A stretch of DNA of 64,000 nucleotides, from positions 10,634,209 to 10,698,208 of the forward strand of contig NW_002060943.1 in assembly GCF_000150275.1 (NCBI RefSeq), in the 5' to 3' direction. The translations under genes and the position numbers were made by a program. The DNA comes from Trichoplax adhaerens (lineage: Eukaryota; Animalia; Placozoa). How positions within the stretch are numbered: the stretch's first letter is position 1; each line of letters opens with the position of its first letter. Shown here one piece after another: positions 5,838 to 17,331 of the stretch. The notes beneath the pieces are model-generated. The model saw only the letters and a list, made by a program, of their open reading frames with translations. It did no database searches and was not told the origin of the DNA.

Positions 5838-6739
5838 ATTGCTGTTCACGTTGGACGGTGCACGACCAGTATTGATATGCAGTAATAACAACTGTTATAA
5901 GCGACGTGAGTCTGTGACGCCCGTTTGCCGATATACTGTAGTTCTCCAGTACTGTACAGTACTCAAGGTTGTGTGCCGTCCTGTTACAGTGCCGTACAGT
6001 ACGTACTGTAGTGTACAGTGTACAGTACAGTACTGTACTGTACTGTACGCAACTACAGTACAGTACTCTACTTACTGTACTGTATTACTTAACAGCAACC
6101 GGTGTACTGTACTGTACACTGTACAGTACTGTACTGTACAATATGTGTTAAGGTAAAACCCGAAATGATCGAAAACCGATTCTCGGGCTTTACAGTACTG
6201 TACTGTACTGTACAGTACAGTATAACAGTAGAAGTCTATAGTACTGCGTACTGTGCATTGTACACTATACAGTACAGTACACAGTACAAATGAGTACTGT
6301 ACCGTACACTGCTAACTGTACTGTACTGTACTGTAGAGATACAGTACTGTATCTGTTTTTCTCTGATACTGTACTGTACTGTACTGTAGAGATACAGTAT
6401 CTGTTTTTCTCTGATACTGTACTGTACTGTACTGTATTGTACTGTACAGTACGGTACAGTACAGTATACTGTAGGGGCTAATGATAACCGTAGACTGTAG
6501 GGGTTAATGATAACCTTTATATCTGAAAGGAAGATTTTGAGCCTGGATAGTCAGAACCTCAGCGAAAATAGTAAAATTAATTATATATATATAGAACATA
6601 AAAATCAAACTCGAGATATTCTCTACCCATAACGACTATCAGCACATCCGTCTAATATTGGAGATCAGCTAGAGCATCTTATTGAGTCTCACTGTGTGAT
6701 CGTAGTGCGACATTTCGGTGATTAGGCTCGTCTGCTGCA
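5838..6739. promoter_or_regulatory. Bidirectional promoter region NDUFS3 <- -> COPS4
   Basis: About 900 bp separate divergent ATGs at 5837 (-) and 6740 (+). Confidence 0.75.
5934..6473. repeat. Degenerate (TACTG/CAGTA)n array in the NDUFS3-COPS4 divergent promoter, split by a central CCCGA hairpin
   Basis: Dozens of tactg/cagta/tgtac units in both orientations. An approximately 50-bp unit (ctgtagagatacagta...tctgtttttctctgatactgtactgt) is duplicated at about 6330-6430. Confidence 0.92.
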
Positions 6740-9700
6740 ATGGCGAATATTCGTGCTTCGCTCAACGCTTTAGCCCGCAGCAATGCAGCATCTAGAGATA
6801 TCCTTGATCAGTACAAGAAAATTCTCAATACTATATTTCAAGGCAATCCTGAGGAATTAATTGATGGTACCAAGGCATTCGTGGAAAGCTGTAAGAACTA
6901 ATATTAAGTTATCTCCTATCTTGTTATGATTGTGATGTACAAGAATCAAACTCTCTTATTGCACCTACTACAGTATAGTGTTGTTGAATTACATGACACT
7001 ACCATCATGACTGACTGGATGGAGTCAAGCCATAGACTACTCAAAATTATTTTCGTACAAATTTCTAGTCGTCCATCATGTAGCGTATTGACGATACAAG
7101 TTAAACGAACATTATACCAGTTGTATTCTAATTCTTATACGTTAACTTTTATTGATATCAGCTCAAAGCTAGGTTAATGATATCATTTGTGACTCTGGAA
7201 ATTTTCTTACTGGATTGTATTTAGTTATTCGAAATCTTAACTTCATTTCATATGTCATGTTGAACTATTCTAGTAGTGGTAGATGAGCATATTGATCTCG
7301 TAACTTCCCGTCAAATGTTAGCGGAGCTTGCAGAAAAATTATCCTCGTTGCCTGATGAATCGACCAAGGAAATTTGTCATTTTATTATATCTAAAGTTCA
7401 ACCACGCGCTTTGTCCTTCGAAGATCAGGTTGGTTTAATTTGTATGGCATTCTATCATTAATCCGTTGCATTGAGACTGTCTCAGAAATTTAAATATACT
7501 TCATAAACGTAATATTTGAAATCCTTATAAGGGGTTATTCCATTCTTCTGATAACAAGCATTGTTTGTAATCTCCAAAATATCCCACTTTTGTTACTAGT
7601 TAATAACCGTTAGGCGTATCCTCTCCGGCATGTACGAAAAAGAGCAAAATTGGAACGATGCTGCTAATGTATTAGCCGGTATCCAGCTAGAAAGTGGCCA
7701 AAAGTAAGTAGAAGAAGGCCCAGTTTATAAATGAAAATGATGGCTATAAGAGTTGCCTATTTGCATTGGTATACTACGGCAATAAATATATATATATTGT
7801 AGTGATCTTTAATTTCTATGACATTAAATTCTGTTATAGGCAATATTCTACTGATTTCAAGTTAGAAATTTACCTAAAAATTGCTCAGTTATACCTAGAA
7901 AATGAAGACGCTGTTCAAGCTGAGGCTTACATTAACAGAGCTTCGGTATTGCAGCTTCAGTCTAAGGAAACCAGATTACGAATATTATATAAAGTAAGTA
8001 ATAGTAATAATGAAAATTGACTAATTGGTATTGTCCTATCGAAATGAAACGGGATGATAATCAATCGTCTGCATTGGAATTATGGCTCGTTTACAAGAAA
8101 TTGCCATCCATCCAATTAACGTTTAAGTCAAGTTCAATGTTTACCCATTTACTATATTTTCTTTATTGATATTCATTGTAATATTTTGAACTTGACCAGT
8201 GTCAAAATATTGAAGAGGATGGGTAAATAATGACTAATATTTTCTAGTAAGATCATGATTCGCAAAATAGTATCACAATAAGTTTAGGTAACATGAAAAT
8301 AGGCTATTAATTTGCCGTTGAATTTGTTCACAAAATCTTAATGCAAGATAACAATACCTGTACATTAAAATTTGGGTTCAGTCATCTTCAAGGAATTATT
8401 GGGCGTATTTTAATCTGAAAATGCTTAGTTGTAATGATCGATATCGCATTTTTGTAGGCTTGTTATGCTCGCGTGTTAGATTATCGACGTAAATTTATTG
8501 AAGCTGCTCATCGCTACATTGAATTATCATACTTCAACGACGTACATGAATCTGAAAGAATGACATCGCTAAAGTTGGCCATGAACTGTACTATACTAGC
8601 ATCTGCAGGTAGTGTAGCAGAATCTGAAATATGTTACGAAATTTGTGAATTGGAGATAGAGATAACATACTTTGGCTGACTTATGGTTAATTATGATCAT
8701 TCAACTAATCTATGCATTAGGTCAACAAAGGTCACGATTGCTGGCTACGCTATTTAAAGATGAAAGATGCCAGCATTTGCCAACTTTTGGTATACTGGAG
8801 AAAATGTAAGCTACATCAGCAACGCTTATGAGATCGTATTAGTAACGGCCCAATTGCATAAAATTCAAAATCAGTCTCGTAAATTTGTGTCTACTTATTA
8901 TTCATAGGTACTTAGATAGAATTATTCGAAAATCTCAATTACTGGAATTTGATGCAATGTTAATGTCCCATCAAAAAGCGACCACCTCAGACGGTATAAT
9001 CTTGAAATCTATTCTATATGCTTTTAATATTTCGTTTTCAACGGTCTGAATGCATATTCTTATTTATTCAAGGATCCAGTATTCTAGACCGAGCTGTGAT
9101 TGAACATAACTTGCTTTCGGCTAGTAAATTATATAAAAATATTACATTCCTAGAGCTTGGAAGACTATTAGAAATCTCTCCGGAAAAGGTAATTTTGTAT
9201 GCTATTCCTTATCTAATCTTAGATAAGATAACTTTAAGTACAGTATAGAGGCTTTCTTCTCAAAATTTGAAAAATTTTAACTTAAAATTGGTTATGGCAG
9301 GCAGAAAAAGTGGCATCACGTATGATAGGGGAAAGAAGAATGGAAGGCTCTATCGACCAAATCGAAGGTCTGGTCGCTTTTCAAAGTAAGATTCCTGTAA
9401 TTACCTTCTTTAGATAATGGATTACTATTGACGACATGATACCTTGCCTTGTACTTAATGTATGATTTAAGTTATAGGATATTATTCGTACTATGCCATA
9501 CTTATTGTTTTATTATAATTGTTTTAAAGTAACATTTACATTATTACTCTTGTACGATCGTTAAATGTTCAAAATTTGCGTCATGTGGTGAACTTAGGGA
9601 TAAAAGATTTTAGCAAAATAATGCAGTAGTTTAATGTATGTTATTTGATCACATTGTGCTGCTATGTTTGGAGCTGTAGGTAGTAATTTAATCAGATTAT

Positions 9701-9893: not shown

Positions 9894-12800
9894 AATTGAT
9901 AATTTAATTTTAGGTAATTTATAAAGTAGTAATTACATTGATTATTCCTGTGTTTGTAATCAATAGTGCTCTATCAGCAGCTGTAGTCAAATATTTTTGG
10001 ATGCGTTGTTTCAAAAATGTATCCTATATTCGGGGAACAGTCCTTGCTACGCTTAAATATATTGTAACACTGTTATTCCTTGGTACTGAAACTCTGATTT
10101 TGATAAAAACCACACACACCATTGTTGATATAAGTATAAATATCTGAAGAATAACAATTATAATGTATGTAGTCATTAATGAAATAATTTTACATTGTTT
10201 GTTGTTACACAAATGCTGTTTGATTCTTCTATTGTTGTACTGCATTGGATGATGCTAACTATGCTAAAACGAGATATCCATATCCAAACTTTTGGTTCTA
10301 TTAAATACATTTAACAGGTATTAAACTATATATTACATTCATCGCATGTGAATCTGAGAATTATATTAGTCGTCATGATATCATTAGTATTTAGAGTTCT
10401 ATCTAAATTATCATCTTAAATATTAAGTGCATTAATGAACATGCAAATGTTAATTATACGTCAAGTATTTACCACATGATACTGTGTGAACTATAAATAT
10501 CTAGCCGTATATTTTCTGTACCGATTCTAGAAAAATCTTCTATTCTGCCTATCATATAAAACATGGAATATCACTGTGCGTGTATTCGAAGCGATAGTCT
10601 GAAAGTTTCGATAAAAAGTTGGAAAGGTTTATATTATGAGCCAATGGGTGCGGCCTCGCACTAGATAAATGACATGGAACAGATCTTGATCACGTAGTAC
10701 GAAGCCAAATTATTGACAATTTTGAGGCAGATAGTCTAATGGAAGACAATACTACGGAGAATAAAATGGTTTTATGATTAACATCTGTCGCCTTAATTAG
10801 CGTAACAATATCAAGAAATGATATTGCATATCCGTTTGCGTCAATGTCACAGTTTGTATATTATTTCATTAGAATTAAAATTTTATGGAGCAGTCGCTTG
10901 TCCAGTAATCAACTCAAAATGCCTTTACTTGACTTTGTTAACTATGCGAAAACATTGTTGTTTGGATCAAGACCATGTAAAGGCTATTAACGAGCGAAAT
11001 AATATCAATTGATGCAGCTCTTTAACCTATCGATGGCATGAATCTGATTTTAATATCTGTTCAGTTAACTGTCGTCCGCTATATGCGTACTTTGTTATTT
11101 TGATACCTTGCTTAAACTTTACAGAGGTGCCAAAATTTTGTCAGTGCAGACATAGTTAAAATTTTTACCATTGTAATGATTGTGAATGGAGTGCTAAAGG
11201 TTTTTTTATCAATAATTCCTTTTAATATACCATACGTATGATTTTACCGGTAAAAATATTTACATCTTTCCTCTTGACAGAATTGATTATGACTTATTAT
11301 TAAAAATTATAACATTATATTGTATGTTAACGTAGATTTTCTCATAACCATATTAAAACGATTCAAAAATCATAATGCATCATGCGTAGTTTATTTATTT
11401 ATGACGCTTCATCTAATATTTGCGAAAATAGAACGGATCACTTTTAATTTAATGAGGGAAAAGGATAATTATTTCATGATTCCTTTTCTGCATATTACTA
11501 AAAATAACAGTTCTGAAAATAGTAACCGTTGTCTTTGTCTATATAGAGTCAGTAAATAGTTCTACAGAGTAATTAATTAGTTAACAACTGACAACATTGT
11601 TGGGATATAGTATAATTTTAATTAGTCGAGAAGTTAGAAACACAGTAATGATATGATTTCAAGACGATAATATTTGAATGTTGATGCCATAATTTAAGTA
11701 TAATGATACTTCGCTCCTACAATCGTGGGTGTAATTTTTAAACTTGATGATTGCGCATAATAGCGTTATCGCAACCAGAAATTAAATGATTTAAATTTGC
11801 CTATACAATTTAGAGATGAGTAAGACATAAACAATAGATTAAGTTTACTTTTACTGTGATGAATACGATGAAAGATTTTAAAGATTTATGCCTACGAAAT
11901 ATTACAAAATTGTATGTACTTGTCATGAAGTAAATTTCACTACCTAATGCTGACCTTATTGACGTCAGATAATATACTTTAGTATTTATCGAAAATATCG
12001 TTATCTATGACATTACACATTCTTTTATAAATAAATGCATAGTTTATAATATTATCTAAGTACTGACAACTAATACTTACGTAGATTGGCTGTAAACTGA
12101 TTGATTCTTCAATAAAAATTTTGGTTTAGTTTGTCTAAAGAGAGACCAGTGTTATTACTGTTGCTCCTGACGAAATGAGATAGTCAGTATTTAAAGTCGC
12201 CCTATAGGCAAATATCAGGGAGGACAAACCTTACAGTAGACTCGTAATACATTATTATCTTTCTGTAATAGCTCTACTTTTCGTCGTTACAAACTTCGAG
12301 TTCTAACAGTACTATTCATAAAAGACATACGAATACAAAAGTGGGCTAGTACATATTTACAGCTATGTAGTTACCTATCCAAAAACGATAGAATAGGCGA
12401 GGGTTTCCGTAATATAACGATTCTTTGTCTAGTTCGGTTCATTCATTTCGTAAGCTTTATTTATTATCTGTCGGATAATTTAGATAAGATTAATTATTCA
12501 AGTTATTAATGATATTGATGAGAAGACTCTTTAGAAAAAATTTTGTTCTGAATTTATAACTGTTTTTAACTAACCACAATTTGAGAAGTTGCTGATTTGC
12601 GTCTATATTTTTAACTGACCGTGATGAAAAGAATTAAAGATTTGATTATTACTTCAAGAAGAAAAGAATGATCAATATTAGTGGTGATTTTAGTTAAATA
12701 CTTTAATTAGAATAACCGTAATTTATTTATAATCTTTCCGTTAAACCCAATTAACATTGTGACTTTGTCGGCCATGGCGGATGTTACAGTAATTACATTG

Positions 12801-14458
12801 ATTGAAAGTAATTCAATTTGATCACTATTAAATGAATTTTATGTGATTAATTAATTATCAGATATGTCGATAATAAGATGATGCAGCATTTTTAATTAAT
12901 TACCATATATATATATATAAGTTAGACTGTGACCTTAAATCATTTTATCGCTTATTTGAAATCTTTCATCAACGGTAAATCTTATAATTACAATACGCAC
13001 TTTACCATAGAAAGATCTGACTGAACGGATATTATCAAAAAGGTAAGCATGAAATTGGTTGTAAAATTTTGTATTAGCAGTCTCTATCGATTAGCATTAA
13101 TATCCGCTATCGTACTACAATATTTATGTTATATATGAGAAATACAATACGAAATTTCATGACTTCAGTATCTTCCAGATACGACTATATCACATGTGTA
13201 CGCGTATATACGTATACAATTGATACTTTATTGTTGTAGAGTAATAGTAAGTATCTAATATTTGAGTAACTCGAGATAGAGTAATTGGGAGATGAAGCTA
13301 CTTCATGAAATACCCAAGGCATCCAAAATAGATAGTGAGTCCTACTATTGTGATAGGTTACGAAATTATTACGGCAATAGCTATGAGTAGTAGAGTGTTA
13401 GGATTTTTTCGCTGATCTGGGTTGAAAGTGATGTTCCGAACGTATTGACCAAAAATTATGATAGGAACCAATGCTATCTAATTTCGCACCAGTTGACCTA
13501 CGATTATACAATACTTTTAAAGTGTATCAAATATTAAATGACAAGCAACAGCATATAAGATGTCACATGTAAGTAGTACAGTATTTACCCCATATCTGAT
13601 TTTCTCCTTGGCATTCTTGGCCAATGAATATAAACTGACATTGATTTCTGCATTTAAGTGACACTTTTTAAAACTTATCATCCAGTTATTATCACAATTT
13701 CACCTTTAAATTGTAAGTTTTAACAATATAATCATCTTATTTGGTTGCATATAATAAATTAGATAATTGAAAAGAGCAATTACTATGTCCCTCTCATAAT
13801 TATATAATTGACATAACAATTTCAATCGCTATCATACCTTATCACTAATTTTTATGATTGAAAAACAGGCATTGAATTAGGTAAACTATGCGTATTTTCC
13901 CTGCAGACATAGCTCTTAGTTTATTGCTAGCTCCAATTTGTTTCTATGCAAACTTCTCATATAATAGATTAAGATCATAATTAAGGGTACTTAGAATCGT
14001 AGAGTCGGATCTGCCATACTACGATATGTAATCTATATTCTGTTAACATAGTGAAGTAAAAGTTCATTAAGAGTAAGATGCTATTCATAAATTTTATATA
14101 AAAATATACGAAAGATACGATAAATACAGTACATAGATAGCTCATCGGTATCGAAAACTATTAAATATCAAAATCATAAGATATCGCTCAATACTATAAA
14201 GTACTTTAATTTGATATCGGAATATTGAGCCAATAATTTATCATAAGCAAGTGATCCTGGATAAAACACAGTATCAATAGCAGATCAGTATGGGAATTAA
14301 TCTACTGTACAGTAAATGCTTTTAGACTTGTAGTAAACACTACTGTCCAGAGATTTTTGATAAATTATTAACACTAAACGATGGAGTTTTTTGTAGCAGA
14401 AATTATGTATTCGTATCAGGTATGCCTTAACTTTATTTGCATTTCGTTTTAGTTTGGA

Positions 14459-15576
14459 ATGGCTCGAATAATGACCTTGCTTTTTGGGGCTATTTGCATA
14501 CTTTGCATTACTCAAATTACTCAAGCAGTAACAACTAAATCTGCTAAAGTATCTAAGACCATAGGCAAAGGTGCAATGAATTATTCTGCTAATGATTCTG
14601 TGGCTTTCATTACATTAGATTACCGTAAATGAACATACAGCAGTAAAGAAGATTTAGGAATACTATGTATGATATGATCAAAAATAATATATTCTTATAA
14701 TATTTGATATAGATGAACTATTTGTTCGCTACCTCGATTACTTCGCCAAAAAAATCAATGAAGCTGAAAGAAACTTAAAAGAAATGAAGGCTTTGTTAAG
14801 AACCGGGCGCGATATGATGACTAAATGCCATTCTGTATCCACTATTATGAGTAAGTGCTCCATCATTGAATTAGTTTGAATCTAATTAAGCAATACACTA
14901 TCATAAATAAATAAAGTGTGTACTTACTAATATAGGATTAGGATAGTTTTATTCATGCTGAAATCGGATTAGAATTATAGACAAGATATGATTAGAAATG
15001 TTTTAAACGACGTAAATAGTGAAGCTGTAATAAATCGTTGCGATACTGTATTTGCTGAATAGAATTAAGTTAAGATTTTATCAATGTATGAGTATATTCT
15101 TACTGTAGCAAACATGTAAACCTATACCATACAATTATATGTAAGATATTAATTAAGCAGTCACATTCTGTAATCTACATAGGAAGCAGTAAAAGCCCAG
15201 AAGAAGCCGTAGAGAAGTTAAAAGACTTGAGCTTTATTGGCTTCGATAACGTGGCAAGAGGTGAGATTATTATTTGTAAACTGTTTCTGCAGTAATAATT
15301 ATTCAAGCCTAATTACATCAAAGAATTAATACATTCATATTGACATCTATTGAAATTTATCATCAGTCTATTTATCATTCTAATTCCAGTAACTACGCTA
15401 CTCAGTGTAATATCTTTTACGAATTATAAATACACTTATCTATTAGTAATGCGCACTTATTTCCATTCTTTTGTGATCCTTTAATAAGGAGTCTGATTTT
15501 ATATTGTTTTATAACAGGCAATGAATGCAACAATCCTGATGATTGTTTCCCTTTTGCAGGATTTTTCTTCGGTTAA
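14459..15576 (+). CDS. Small secreted protein, candidate (neuro)peptide prohormone, 128 aa, 4 coding exons, C-terminal Gly amidation signal
   Basis: Exons 14459-14570, 14713-14850, 15183-15260 and 15518-15576, joined by phase-1 GT-AG introns (387 nt in total). Protein: MARIMTLLFGAICILCITQITQA|VTTKSAKVSKTIGKDELFVRYLDYFAKKINEAERNLKEMKALLRTGRDMMTKCHSVSTIMRSSKSPEEAVEKLKDLSFIGFDNVARGNECNNPDDCFPFAGFFFG*. The hydrophobic N-terminus ends in a T-Q-A (-3,-1) site. A splice acceptor at 14452 just before the ATG implies a 5'UTR intron. Confidence 0.8.
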
Positions 15577-17331
15577 ATATAAATAAAAATATTAAAGATG
15601 TTAATTCAAAATACCCATATTGCACTGGTGTCACAGTTTAAAAGTTGGATATCGGCTAAATGTCATACATCACAAGGGATGTCAGATTTCAGTAGTTAAA
15701 GTTGATAATTAAGTCATTTTTATCTGTAACAGAGTATCAATTTGCATTCTATCTCTAACATGATGGCTTATGTCTATCACGTTTAAATAGTATGATAATA
15801 AGTTTAAAAGTTTCGTTAGAGTGTACCAATAGAGGTTTTATTAACATGCTAATACTTCATTAATAAGTTGATCAAAGCATTAAAACTATAATTCATAATT
15901 TTAAATAGCATTCTTTGATTGTAATTGTGTGCTAAAAATAATTGTTCTGGATTGTAAGTAAATAAATGTCAAATCAACAGCAACTATGGATAAGATAGAT
16001 CAAAACGTCATCGGTTAATCTAGACTTTCGTGAATAGACACGTTTTAATTGAGGATAGCGAAATTTATGTAGCAACACCGGTACACTATAGCAAATTTGG
16101 CACGATGTTTGAAATAACGAGTGTATATCTCGACTAGTAAGACGTACTACTAGTCTTACTCATTAGTAGTTGCAATAATTATAGGTTACTTTTAGCAATA
16201 CACTATGCTTTAATTTGTTTATGAGGACTCAGATTTATTAGCGACACCTTAATGCATTATTATTTTTATTTAGTTCTTCTTAATCATTTATCTTTTCGTT
16301 GTAACACATTTCAATAAACCTGCGAGACCAGCTCTTATTTGTTTCATACGAATATAAAATATTCCTTTTTATAGCTATATGACACTATAATGACTCCTTT
16401 TTATACTGTACTTACTCGTAAATTTTTAGAGTATATTGTTTCCTTCTGTCAATATCCTGATAAACCGTACATTAATATCCTCGTACATATACATACTGTA
16501 ATCCAAATTTAGTATTGCAATTAATGGTATGTACGTGCCTTGGACAGAAAACCCCTCTAATTGCAGTCATTTTAGGACTGATTTTCACTGTGACTTAATA
16601 TAGATTACGTCATATTGGAATATTAATCTTATTTTATTCTCGTGCAAGCCAAAATTTAATCGATTTATATTCTAAAAACTTTGTTTTAATCTGCTATACA
16701 TCATATGCAAGCGTAATATTATTCATCATTTAGACTGAAAGTACTTTTAGGTTCAGATCCAGTATATACGAGTATACACAATATCATATCAAGTTTAGTT
16801 TAATTCATACTAAAAATTTCGATATTGCCTAATTTACTTTTATCAGTAGAATTTACTTTAGCTATGATTAGTAATAAAGCTTATTGACGGTAAGTGACTA
16901 AGTGTTTTATTCCTGTGGGCGAACTAAATTCCAATTTTAATTAATATTGTTTATCATTTAAATAAGAATAAGCATCCAGCCATATAAACTAAATTAGTAC
17001 TTAATAAGTATTAACCGCATACTTACACATATATAAAGTAAACTATTTTAATTTAAATTATTCAACAGTCTAAAGGCATTTTCTATTAGTCGAATTATTA
17101 CAAGCCTTTTCAAATTTTTTCTTATATAAGCATCGATTAAATTTAATGTACTAAAGTGCCATCTTTGCTCATCGAGTATCAATTAAATATCCATACTAGA
17201 AGAACAGTTTATATCAACAAGCTACTAGTATCCTTTTCGTCTACATTTTCTATATAGTAACGTCTTGTAACAATATGACAAAGCAAAATTATTATAATAA
17301 CAAAATGATGCTATTAGCATATCTATTGGTT

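Follow-up and report, generated by a model that had tools for sequence, protein, structure and literature searches.

A five-exon gene of Trichoplax adhaerens for a probable secreted neuropeptide-like precursor, with a candidate Cys-looped, amidated end-peptide

The gene TRIADDRAFT_52566 of Trichoplax adhaerens is best explained as a five-exon, single-copy, TATA-led gene that probably encodes a secreted neuropeptide-like precursor giving rise to several products in the peptidergic epsilon cells. It lies in a window of 64,000 nucleotides (contig NW_002060943.1), the whole of the DNA analyzed, and positions are counted from the first letter of that window. The C-terminal end of the precursor plausibly supplies one candidate product, a predicted peptide with a Cys loop and an FFF-amide terminus, which appears to be undescribed. 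The gene itself has been annotated before, and its peptidergic-cell expression and its listing as a candidate propeptide have been published; the looped FFF-amide and an MKALLRT-amide in Trichoplax were found in none of the texts and tables searched. Placozoans coordinate their behavior without neurons, by means of secreted peptides, and the described set consists mostly of multi-copy linear peptides.

A sequence-only reading of the window had proposed four exons joining in phase into a protein of 128 residues, and this is borne out by both translation and transcript contigs. The four coding segments (112 + 138 + 78 + 59 = 387 nt) join into a single frame of 128 codons followed by TAA. All three coding introns have GT..AG borders (gtgcaa..atatag, gtaagt..acatag and gtgaga..taacag), and the GC content is 36–44% in the exons vs. 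26–27% in the introns. The accompanying statement that no exon appeared among the listed open reading frames stands with one correction: the first coding exon does sit in a frame of 57 residues, under the usual cut of 60. The stretch or parts of it were found in 20 RNA runs from eight studies, most of them containing roughly the fraction of its words that lies in exons. Transcript contigs were examined from four runs, which come from four studies and carry three organism labels. The junctions 14570/14713, 14850/15183 and 15260/15518 are exact in these contigs, each with GT..AG borders, just as had been proposed, and the contigs of the four runs contain no further junction among the exons between 14570 and 15518. 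A chance arrangement of exon-like segments is excluded by these exact junctions.

The contigs also reach both ends of the transcript. In three of the four runs they carry up to 75 extra letters at the 5' end, which match the window solely at 13014–13040; this upstream non-coding exon is joined to 14453, and the gene thus has five exons, four of them coding. The 5'UTR of 83 nt is free of ATG, and the first AUG is the one at 14459. Downstream, the contigs continue unspliced to 15809–15983 and then pass into adapter or poly(A), one of them ending with 20 untemplated A residues 17 nt past an AATAAA. Onward splicing from 15571, which had been feared as a way in which the Gly and stop codons would lose their terminal position, is absent, with contigs unspliced to 15877 and 15983. 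Coding exons 2 and 4 each match their own locus alone in the genome and found no paralogs there, in agreement with the earlier claim of a single copy. The features of the gene, all on the forward strand, are given below.

12905–12920 (+): TATA-like run atatatatatatatata, putative core promoter, 46–61 nt ahead of the point where the longest contig begins
12966–13042 (+; start approximate): non-coding first exon (5'UTR) with donor AAAAAG/gtaagc, from the 5' letters of the contigs and the sequence
14453–14570 (+): exon 2 of the gene (the first with coding sequence), with 6 nt of 5'UTR; translation starts at 14459 and covers the signal peptide and the beginning of the pro-region, from sequence and contigs
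14459–14527 (+): signal peptide MARIMTLLFGAICILCITQITQA, from its hydrophobic core and the published wSP flag on the identical H2 protein
14713–14850 (+): coding exon 2, pro-region with KK/INEAERNL/K and E/MKALLRT-GR, from sequence and contigs; Hoilungia mass spectrometry (MS) peptides map here
14784–14810 (+): E/MKALLRT-GR, predicted internal amidated heptapeptide, from the mapping of Hoilungia MS peptides
15183–15260 (+): coding exon 3, ...SKSPEEAVEKLKDLSFIGFDNVAR, with R109 and base 1 of the codon for Gly110 at its 3' end, from sequence and contigs; SPEEAV and KMSFVGFDQA/GFDQA map here
15518–15576 (+): coding exon 4, GNECNNPDDCFPFAGFFF, with Cys113 and Cys119 (C-X5-C), Gly128 at 15571–15573 and TAA at 15574–15576, from sequence and contigs
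15558–15559 (+; tract 15543–15559): in-frame alternative acceptor AG, ttgtttcccttttgcag/GA, which would give ...VAR-GFFFG-stop; its use is unsupported by the contigs
15577–15983 (+): unspliced 3'UTR with AATAAA at 15961–15966 and poly(A) at about 15983, from contigs and sequence

The gene had been taken for a hidden one, which it is not: both Trichoplax genomes carry an annotation for it. The spliced model is letter for letter that of RDD47176.1 ('hypothetical protein TrispH2_000223', 128 residues) from Trichoplax sp. H2, and the 90% cluster of this entry includes the T. adhaerens protein XP_002108260.1 (TRIADDRAFT_52566, B3RJ45) of 143 residues. The sole difference between the latter and the spliced model is a 15-residue N-terminal extension, MEFFVAEIMYSYQFG, which derives from a predicted exon at 14381–14419 (+). 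The transcript contigs leave that exon unused and contain the exon ending at 13042, and the extension in the T. adhaerens reference model is thus without RNA support. It would bury the signal peptide, which would then be masked in signal-peptide screens of the Triad1 proteome. Relative to the window, Trichoplax sp. H2 has a 5-nt deletion (GATAT) at 14985–14989 in intron 2 and two synonymous changes in coding exon 2, at 14774 and 14798, and the RNA contigs show a synonymous G to A change at 14488. The differences between H1 and H2, about 12 per kb across 6.8 kb together with two synonymous exon changes, are too few for a test of selection.

Two observations concern the flanks of the gene. The segment ATGGCGGATGTTACAG/gtaatt at 12774–12795 (+), located some 190 nt ahead of where the transcript begins, has the look of a start codon followed by a donor site, which may be due to chance; the H2 annotation of the compared locus has no gene at this position. 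The next downstream gene in the H2 locus (6176–7113 of that locus, from about 17630 (+) in the window) encodes an ankyrin-repeat protein of 686 residues (Pfam Ank_2/Ank_4/Ank_5), which appears to be unrelated to the peptide gene.

The spliced protein has a hydrophobic core at residues 5–20 followed by the cleavage-site sequence TQA/V, and it has no TM segment other than the signal peptide. The region that follows, read earlier as a pro-region, contains 18 Lys/Arg residues, including KK50–51 and RTGR67–70, and the spliced product ends in ...FDNVAR-GNECNNPDDCFPFAGFFF-G-stop. The description of a single Arg in front of the tail holds for R109, which is locally alone, but not for the upstream part of the protein, where KK and RTGR occur among the 18 basic residues. 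Classical monobasic cleavage sites are expected to have a Lys or Arg at P4, P6 or P8, and R109 has one at none of these positions. A third Cys (C76) makes the Cys count of the proprotein odd. The AlphaFold single-sequence model (mean pLDDT 63.9, pTM 0.33) has helices at residues 2–34 and 37–85, and the last 28 residues, with pLDDT below 50, are outside any confident fold. Confidence in this model is too low to justify a fold search, and the model speaks neither for nor against an intact helical protein.

The same gene is a published candidate propeptide. In Table S5A of Najle et al. (2023, Cell 186:4676; PMC10580291), TrH2_TrispH2_000223 is listed as OG_1256, an orthogroup with members in Tadh, TrH2, Hhon and HoiH23, that is, in four placozoan species. 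The Trichoplax gene studied here is the same as OG_1256 (TrispH2_000223/Hhon_g04515.t1, peptide H2NP029 SPEEAV), and the two proteins, its own and TrispH2_000223, are 100% identical. Secretion, proposed from the sequence, and peptidergic-cell expression, suggested there as a check, agree with the published table, where the top cell type is peptidergic_epsilon (FC 22.0) and the identical H2 protein has the flag 'nosignature_wSP_nTM', based on SignalP 5 and TMHMM (PMC10580291). Candidates in that study were selected by peptidergic specificity and a signal peptide, without a TM segment and without a Pfam domain (PMC10580291). Convertase, carboxypeptidases, PAM and glutaminyl cyclase are common to peptidergic cells. 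In the examined parts of the paper OG_1256 is unnamed, and zero H2 peptides are recorded as detected from TrispH2_000223 (PMC10580291). Together with the modest FC of 22 in H2, this counts against the reading as a precursor of several products. As a separate observation, Table S5B also assigns to the epsilon cells the unnamed SPYSSNGV-amide (OG_1405) and YPSRLAM-amide (OG_2854) (PMC10580291), and this cell type may co-release several uncharacterized amidated peptides.

The Hoilungia ortholog, Hhon_g04515.t1, is expressed in peptidergic_epsilon_like cells (FC 1039) and is represented by seven MS rows: GFDQA, ISEAENHL (twice), MNSLLKS, SPEEAV, SHPKDTKPLGKDELFI and KMSFVGFDQA (PMC10580291). ISEAENHL has the flanks [R]..[R] in one of its two rows, and MNSLLKS is C-terminally amidated with the flanks [E]..[G]. 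The fragments ending in GFDQA have low DeepNovo confidence (40–60) and no reported flanks (PMC10580291). SPEEAV was curated as H2NP029 and entered the docking screen of that study (PMC10580291). Mapped to Trichoplax, the Hoilungia peptides occupy residues 30–42, 52–59, 62–68, 88–93 and 99–105 of the protein; ISEAENHL corresponds to KK/INEAERNL/K (52–59) and MNSLLKS-amide to E/MKALLRT/GR (62–68). The sequence-only reading had described the pro-region as helical-looking. Since the Hoilungia ortholog yields an amidated internal peptide from it (PMC10580291), the region is probably itself processed, and taking it as inert is probably wrong. The corresponding Trichoplax product, expected by homology, is MKALLRT-amide, cut at the RTGR site.

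We propose the following route for the precursor. Signal peptidase would cut near A23/V24. Convertases would cleave at KK50–51 and RTGR67–70, and carboxypeptidase and PAM would then produce MKALLRT-amide. Release of the tail would come from a cut at R109 or close by, or else from one following E112; N-terminal processing at acidic residues has been described for both cnidarians (PMC6909153) and placozoans. PAM would use the terminal Gly128 to leave a Phe127-amide, Cys113 and Cys119 would close a seven-residue C-X5-C ring, and the products would serve as paracrine signals, with GPCRs or DEG/ENaC channels as receptors. We put the final form of the tail forward more tentatively than the precursor itself: at somewhat below an even chance, it is a disulfide-cyclized amidated signal, GNECNNPDDCFPFAGFFF-amide or, with a cut after Glu112, CNNPDDCFPFAGFFF-amide, made together with MKALLRT-amide in epsilon cells. 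The computed monoisotopic mass of the predicted cyclized, amidated 18-mer is 2036.78 Da; for MKALLRT-amide, 830.52 Da is expected.

A different view of the precursor is that activity resides in its internal peptides (MKALLRT-amide, INEAERNL and pieces containing SPEEAV) and that the Cys tail is a by-product, being either unreleased at R109 or uncyclized or unamidated. Every ortholog MS peptide lies upstream of R109, one of them amidated, and it was SPEEAV, not the tail, that was docked by Najle et al. (PMC10580291). The RTGR site moreover fits the R-X-X-R convertase pattern, and R109 has no upstream basic partner. In the examined part of Table S5 there is no peptide from the C-terminal exon for either H2 or H13 (PMC10580291). 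However, the MS search behind these data considered no modifications other than amidation, pyro-Glu and Met oxidation (7 ppm, enzyme 'None'; PMC10580291), and a looped tail would have escaped it because no disulfide or other Cys modification was included. The terminal Gly directly after three Phe residues has the form of a PAM substrate, and two mapped ortholog fragments finish beside the residue preceding R109, which suggests that the tail is cut off there. On this evidence we consider it unlikely that the internal peptides are the only active products. If the same gene instead encoded an intact secreted helical protein of about 105 residues, for instance one with a role in the granule matrix, in sorting or as a protein ligand, the MS peptides would be degradation fragments. 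The long helices modeled at 37–85, the non-canonical ends of several MS fragments in a search with the enzyme set to 'None', the absence of a repeated peptide motif and the 'nosignature' flag all fit that description (PMC10580291). The helices, however, belong to a model of low confidence (pLDDT and pTM as given above), the amidated MNSLLKS needs specific Gly-directed processing, ISEAENHL has Arg on both flanks and expression peaks in cells with peptide-processing enzymes (PMC10580291), all of which make an intact protein quite improbable.

The remaining alternative concerns splicing of the tail. A minor isoform made through the in-frame acceptor at 15558/15559 would carry GFFF-amide in place of the looped peptide. 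The strong polypyrimidine tract and AG at 15543–15559 and the preserved frame favor such an isoform, but its junction is absent from the contigs of all four runs; contigs drop rare variants, and this absence is weak evidence. We regard the isoform as very improbable. The preferred reading remains that of a precursor with several products, in which the looped tail is a candidate next to MKALLRT-amide.

Searches for relatives returned the protein itself. With HMMER, coding exon 2 matched only its own product among 1.84 billion representative proteins, and the whole protein RDD47176.1 matched only itself in a collection of 5.8 billion proteins; in these collections, which do not include the Hoilungia, Cladtertia and cnidarian proteomes, no homolog outside Trichoplax was found. 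The ESM Atlas gave no usable match or neighbor, a PDB sequence search gave no relative, and none of 600 pattern matches in JGI metagenomes codes for one. Neither the exons nor the whole protein matched any Pfam family above the cut-off, and no match to PF00214 (calcitonin) appeared at E values up to 10. In the literature, the peptide strings and accession numbers are absent from the main texts searched, and 'FFFamide' was not found as a named peptide in the publications covered, the list of Nikitin (2015) being outside this comparison. Neither the Cys-looped amidated end-peptide nor a Trichoplax MKALLRT-amide is listed or predicted in the examined text and tables of Najle et al. (PMC10580291). 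The suggestion that the find was possibly undescribed thus fails for the gene, which is annotated and was published as candidate propeptide OG_1256, and holds for the looped amidated end-peptide, which is apparently undescribed. Such products may have been overlooked because of the masked signal peptide in the reference model and MS settings blind to disulfides. No earlier report of a cyclic amidated neuropeptide-like molecule from Placozoa was found; if the prediction is correct, the tail would be the first, and it would provide a concrete ligand for the poorly characterized epsilon cell type.

The twelve placozoan preprohormones described by Nikitin include, according to a review, those for FFNPamide, SIFGamide, PRWamide, WPPF and ELPE. 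The precursor resembles this set in its probable secretion from peptidergic cells, in its predicted amidation at a Gly with a basic residue behind it and in its Phe-rich end; N-terminal processing next to acidic residues is likewise common in the set and a candidate route here. In those preprohormones, however, short linear peptides are repeated many times in tandem, whereas TRIADDRAFT_52566 has one copy of each of its heterogeneous peptides, a motif with two Cys residues and a Gly-stop end. Scripts based on repeats would, we infer, miss it.

Calcitonin, CGRP and DH31 share with the Trichoplax tail the C-X5-C spacing and a C-terminal amide. Calcitonin and CGRP have the ring at residues 1/2–7, followed by about 25–30 residues, in peptides of 32–37 residues. 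The Trichoplax peptide is 18 residues long with eight residues after the ring, and its ring is in another position unless the precursor is cut after E112. It also differs from the calcitonin type in having a Phe-amide after a hydrophobic tail, no dibasic flanks and no helix after the ring. Lacking a PF00214 match and deviating in both length and ring position, the peptide was rejected as a member of the calcitonin/CGRP family, and the likeness is architectural only, as the sequence-only reading had maintained.

The nearest analogy outside Bilateria is offered by the cyclic FRamides of cnidarians, CXGQMCWFRamide and CXSPMCWFRXamide from cubozoans and scyphozoans, in which a short, aromatic and amidated tail comes after a cystine ring and the rings are presumed only (Koch and Grimmelikhuijzen 2019; PMC6909153). 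These peptides are preceded by G, N, D, E or S and not by basic residues (PMC6909153), to which the position of the Trichoplax tail can be likened. No sequence similarity to them was seen. They have a C-X4-C ring, a WFRamide tail and several copies per precursor, as against C-X5-C, FPFAGFFFamide and one copy in Trichoplax, and membership in the cnidarian group was rejected on the ring, the FFF-amide end and the single copy. If the tail is indeed a ring-closed amide, the design of a cystine ring plus an amide, known from bilaterian hormones and presumed for some peptides of jellyfish, would extend to placozoans.
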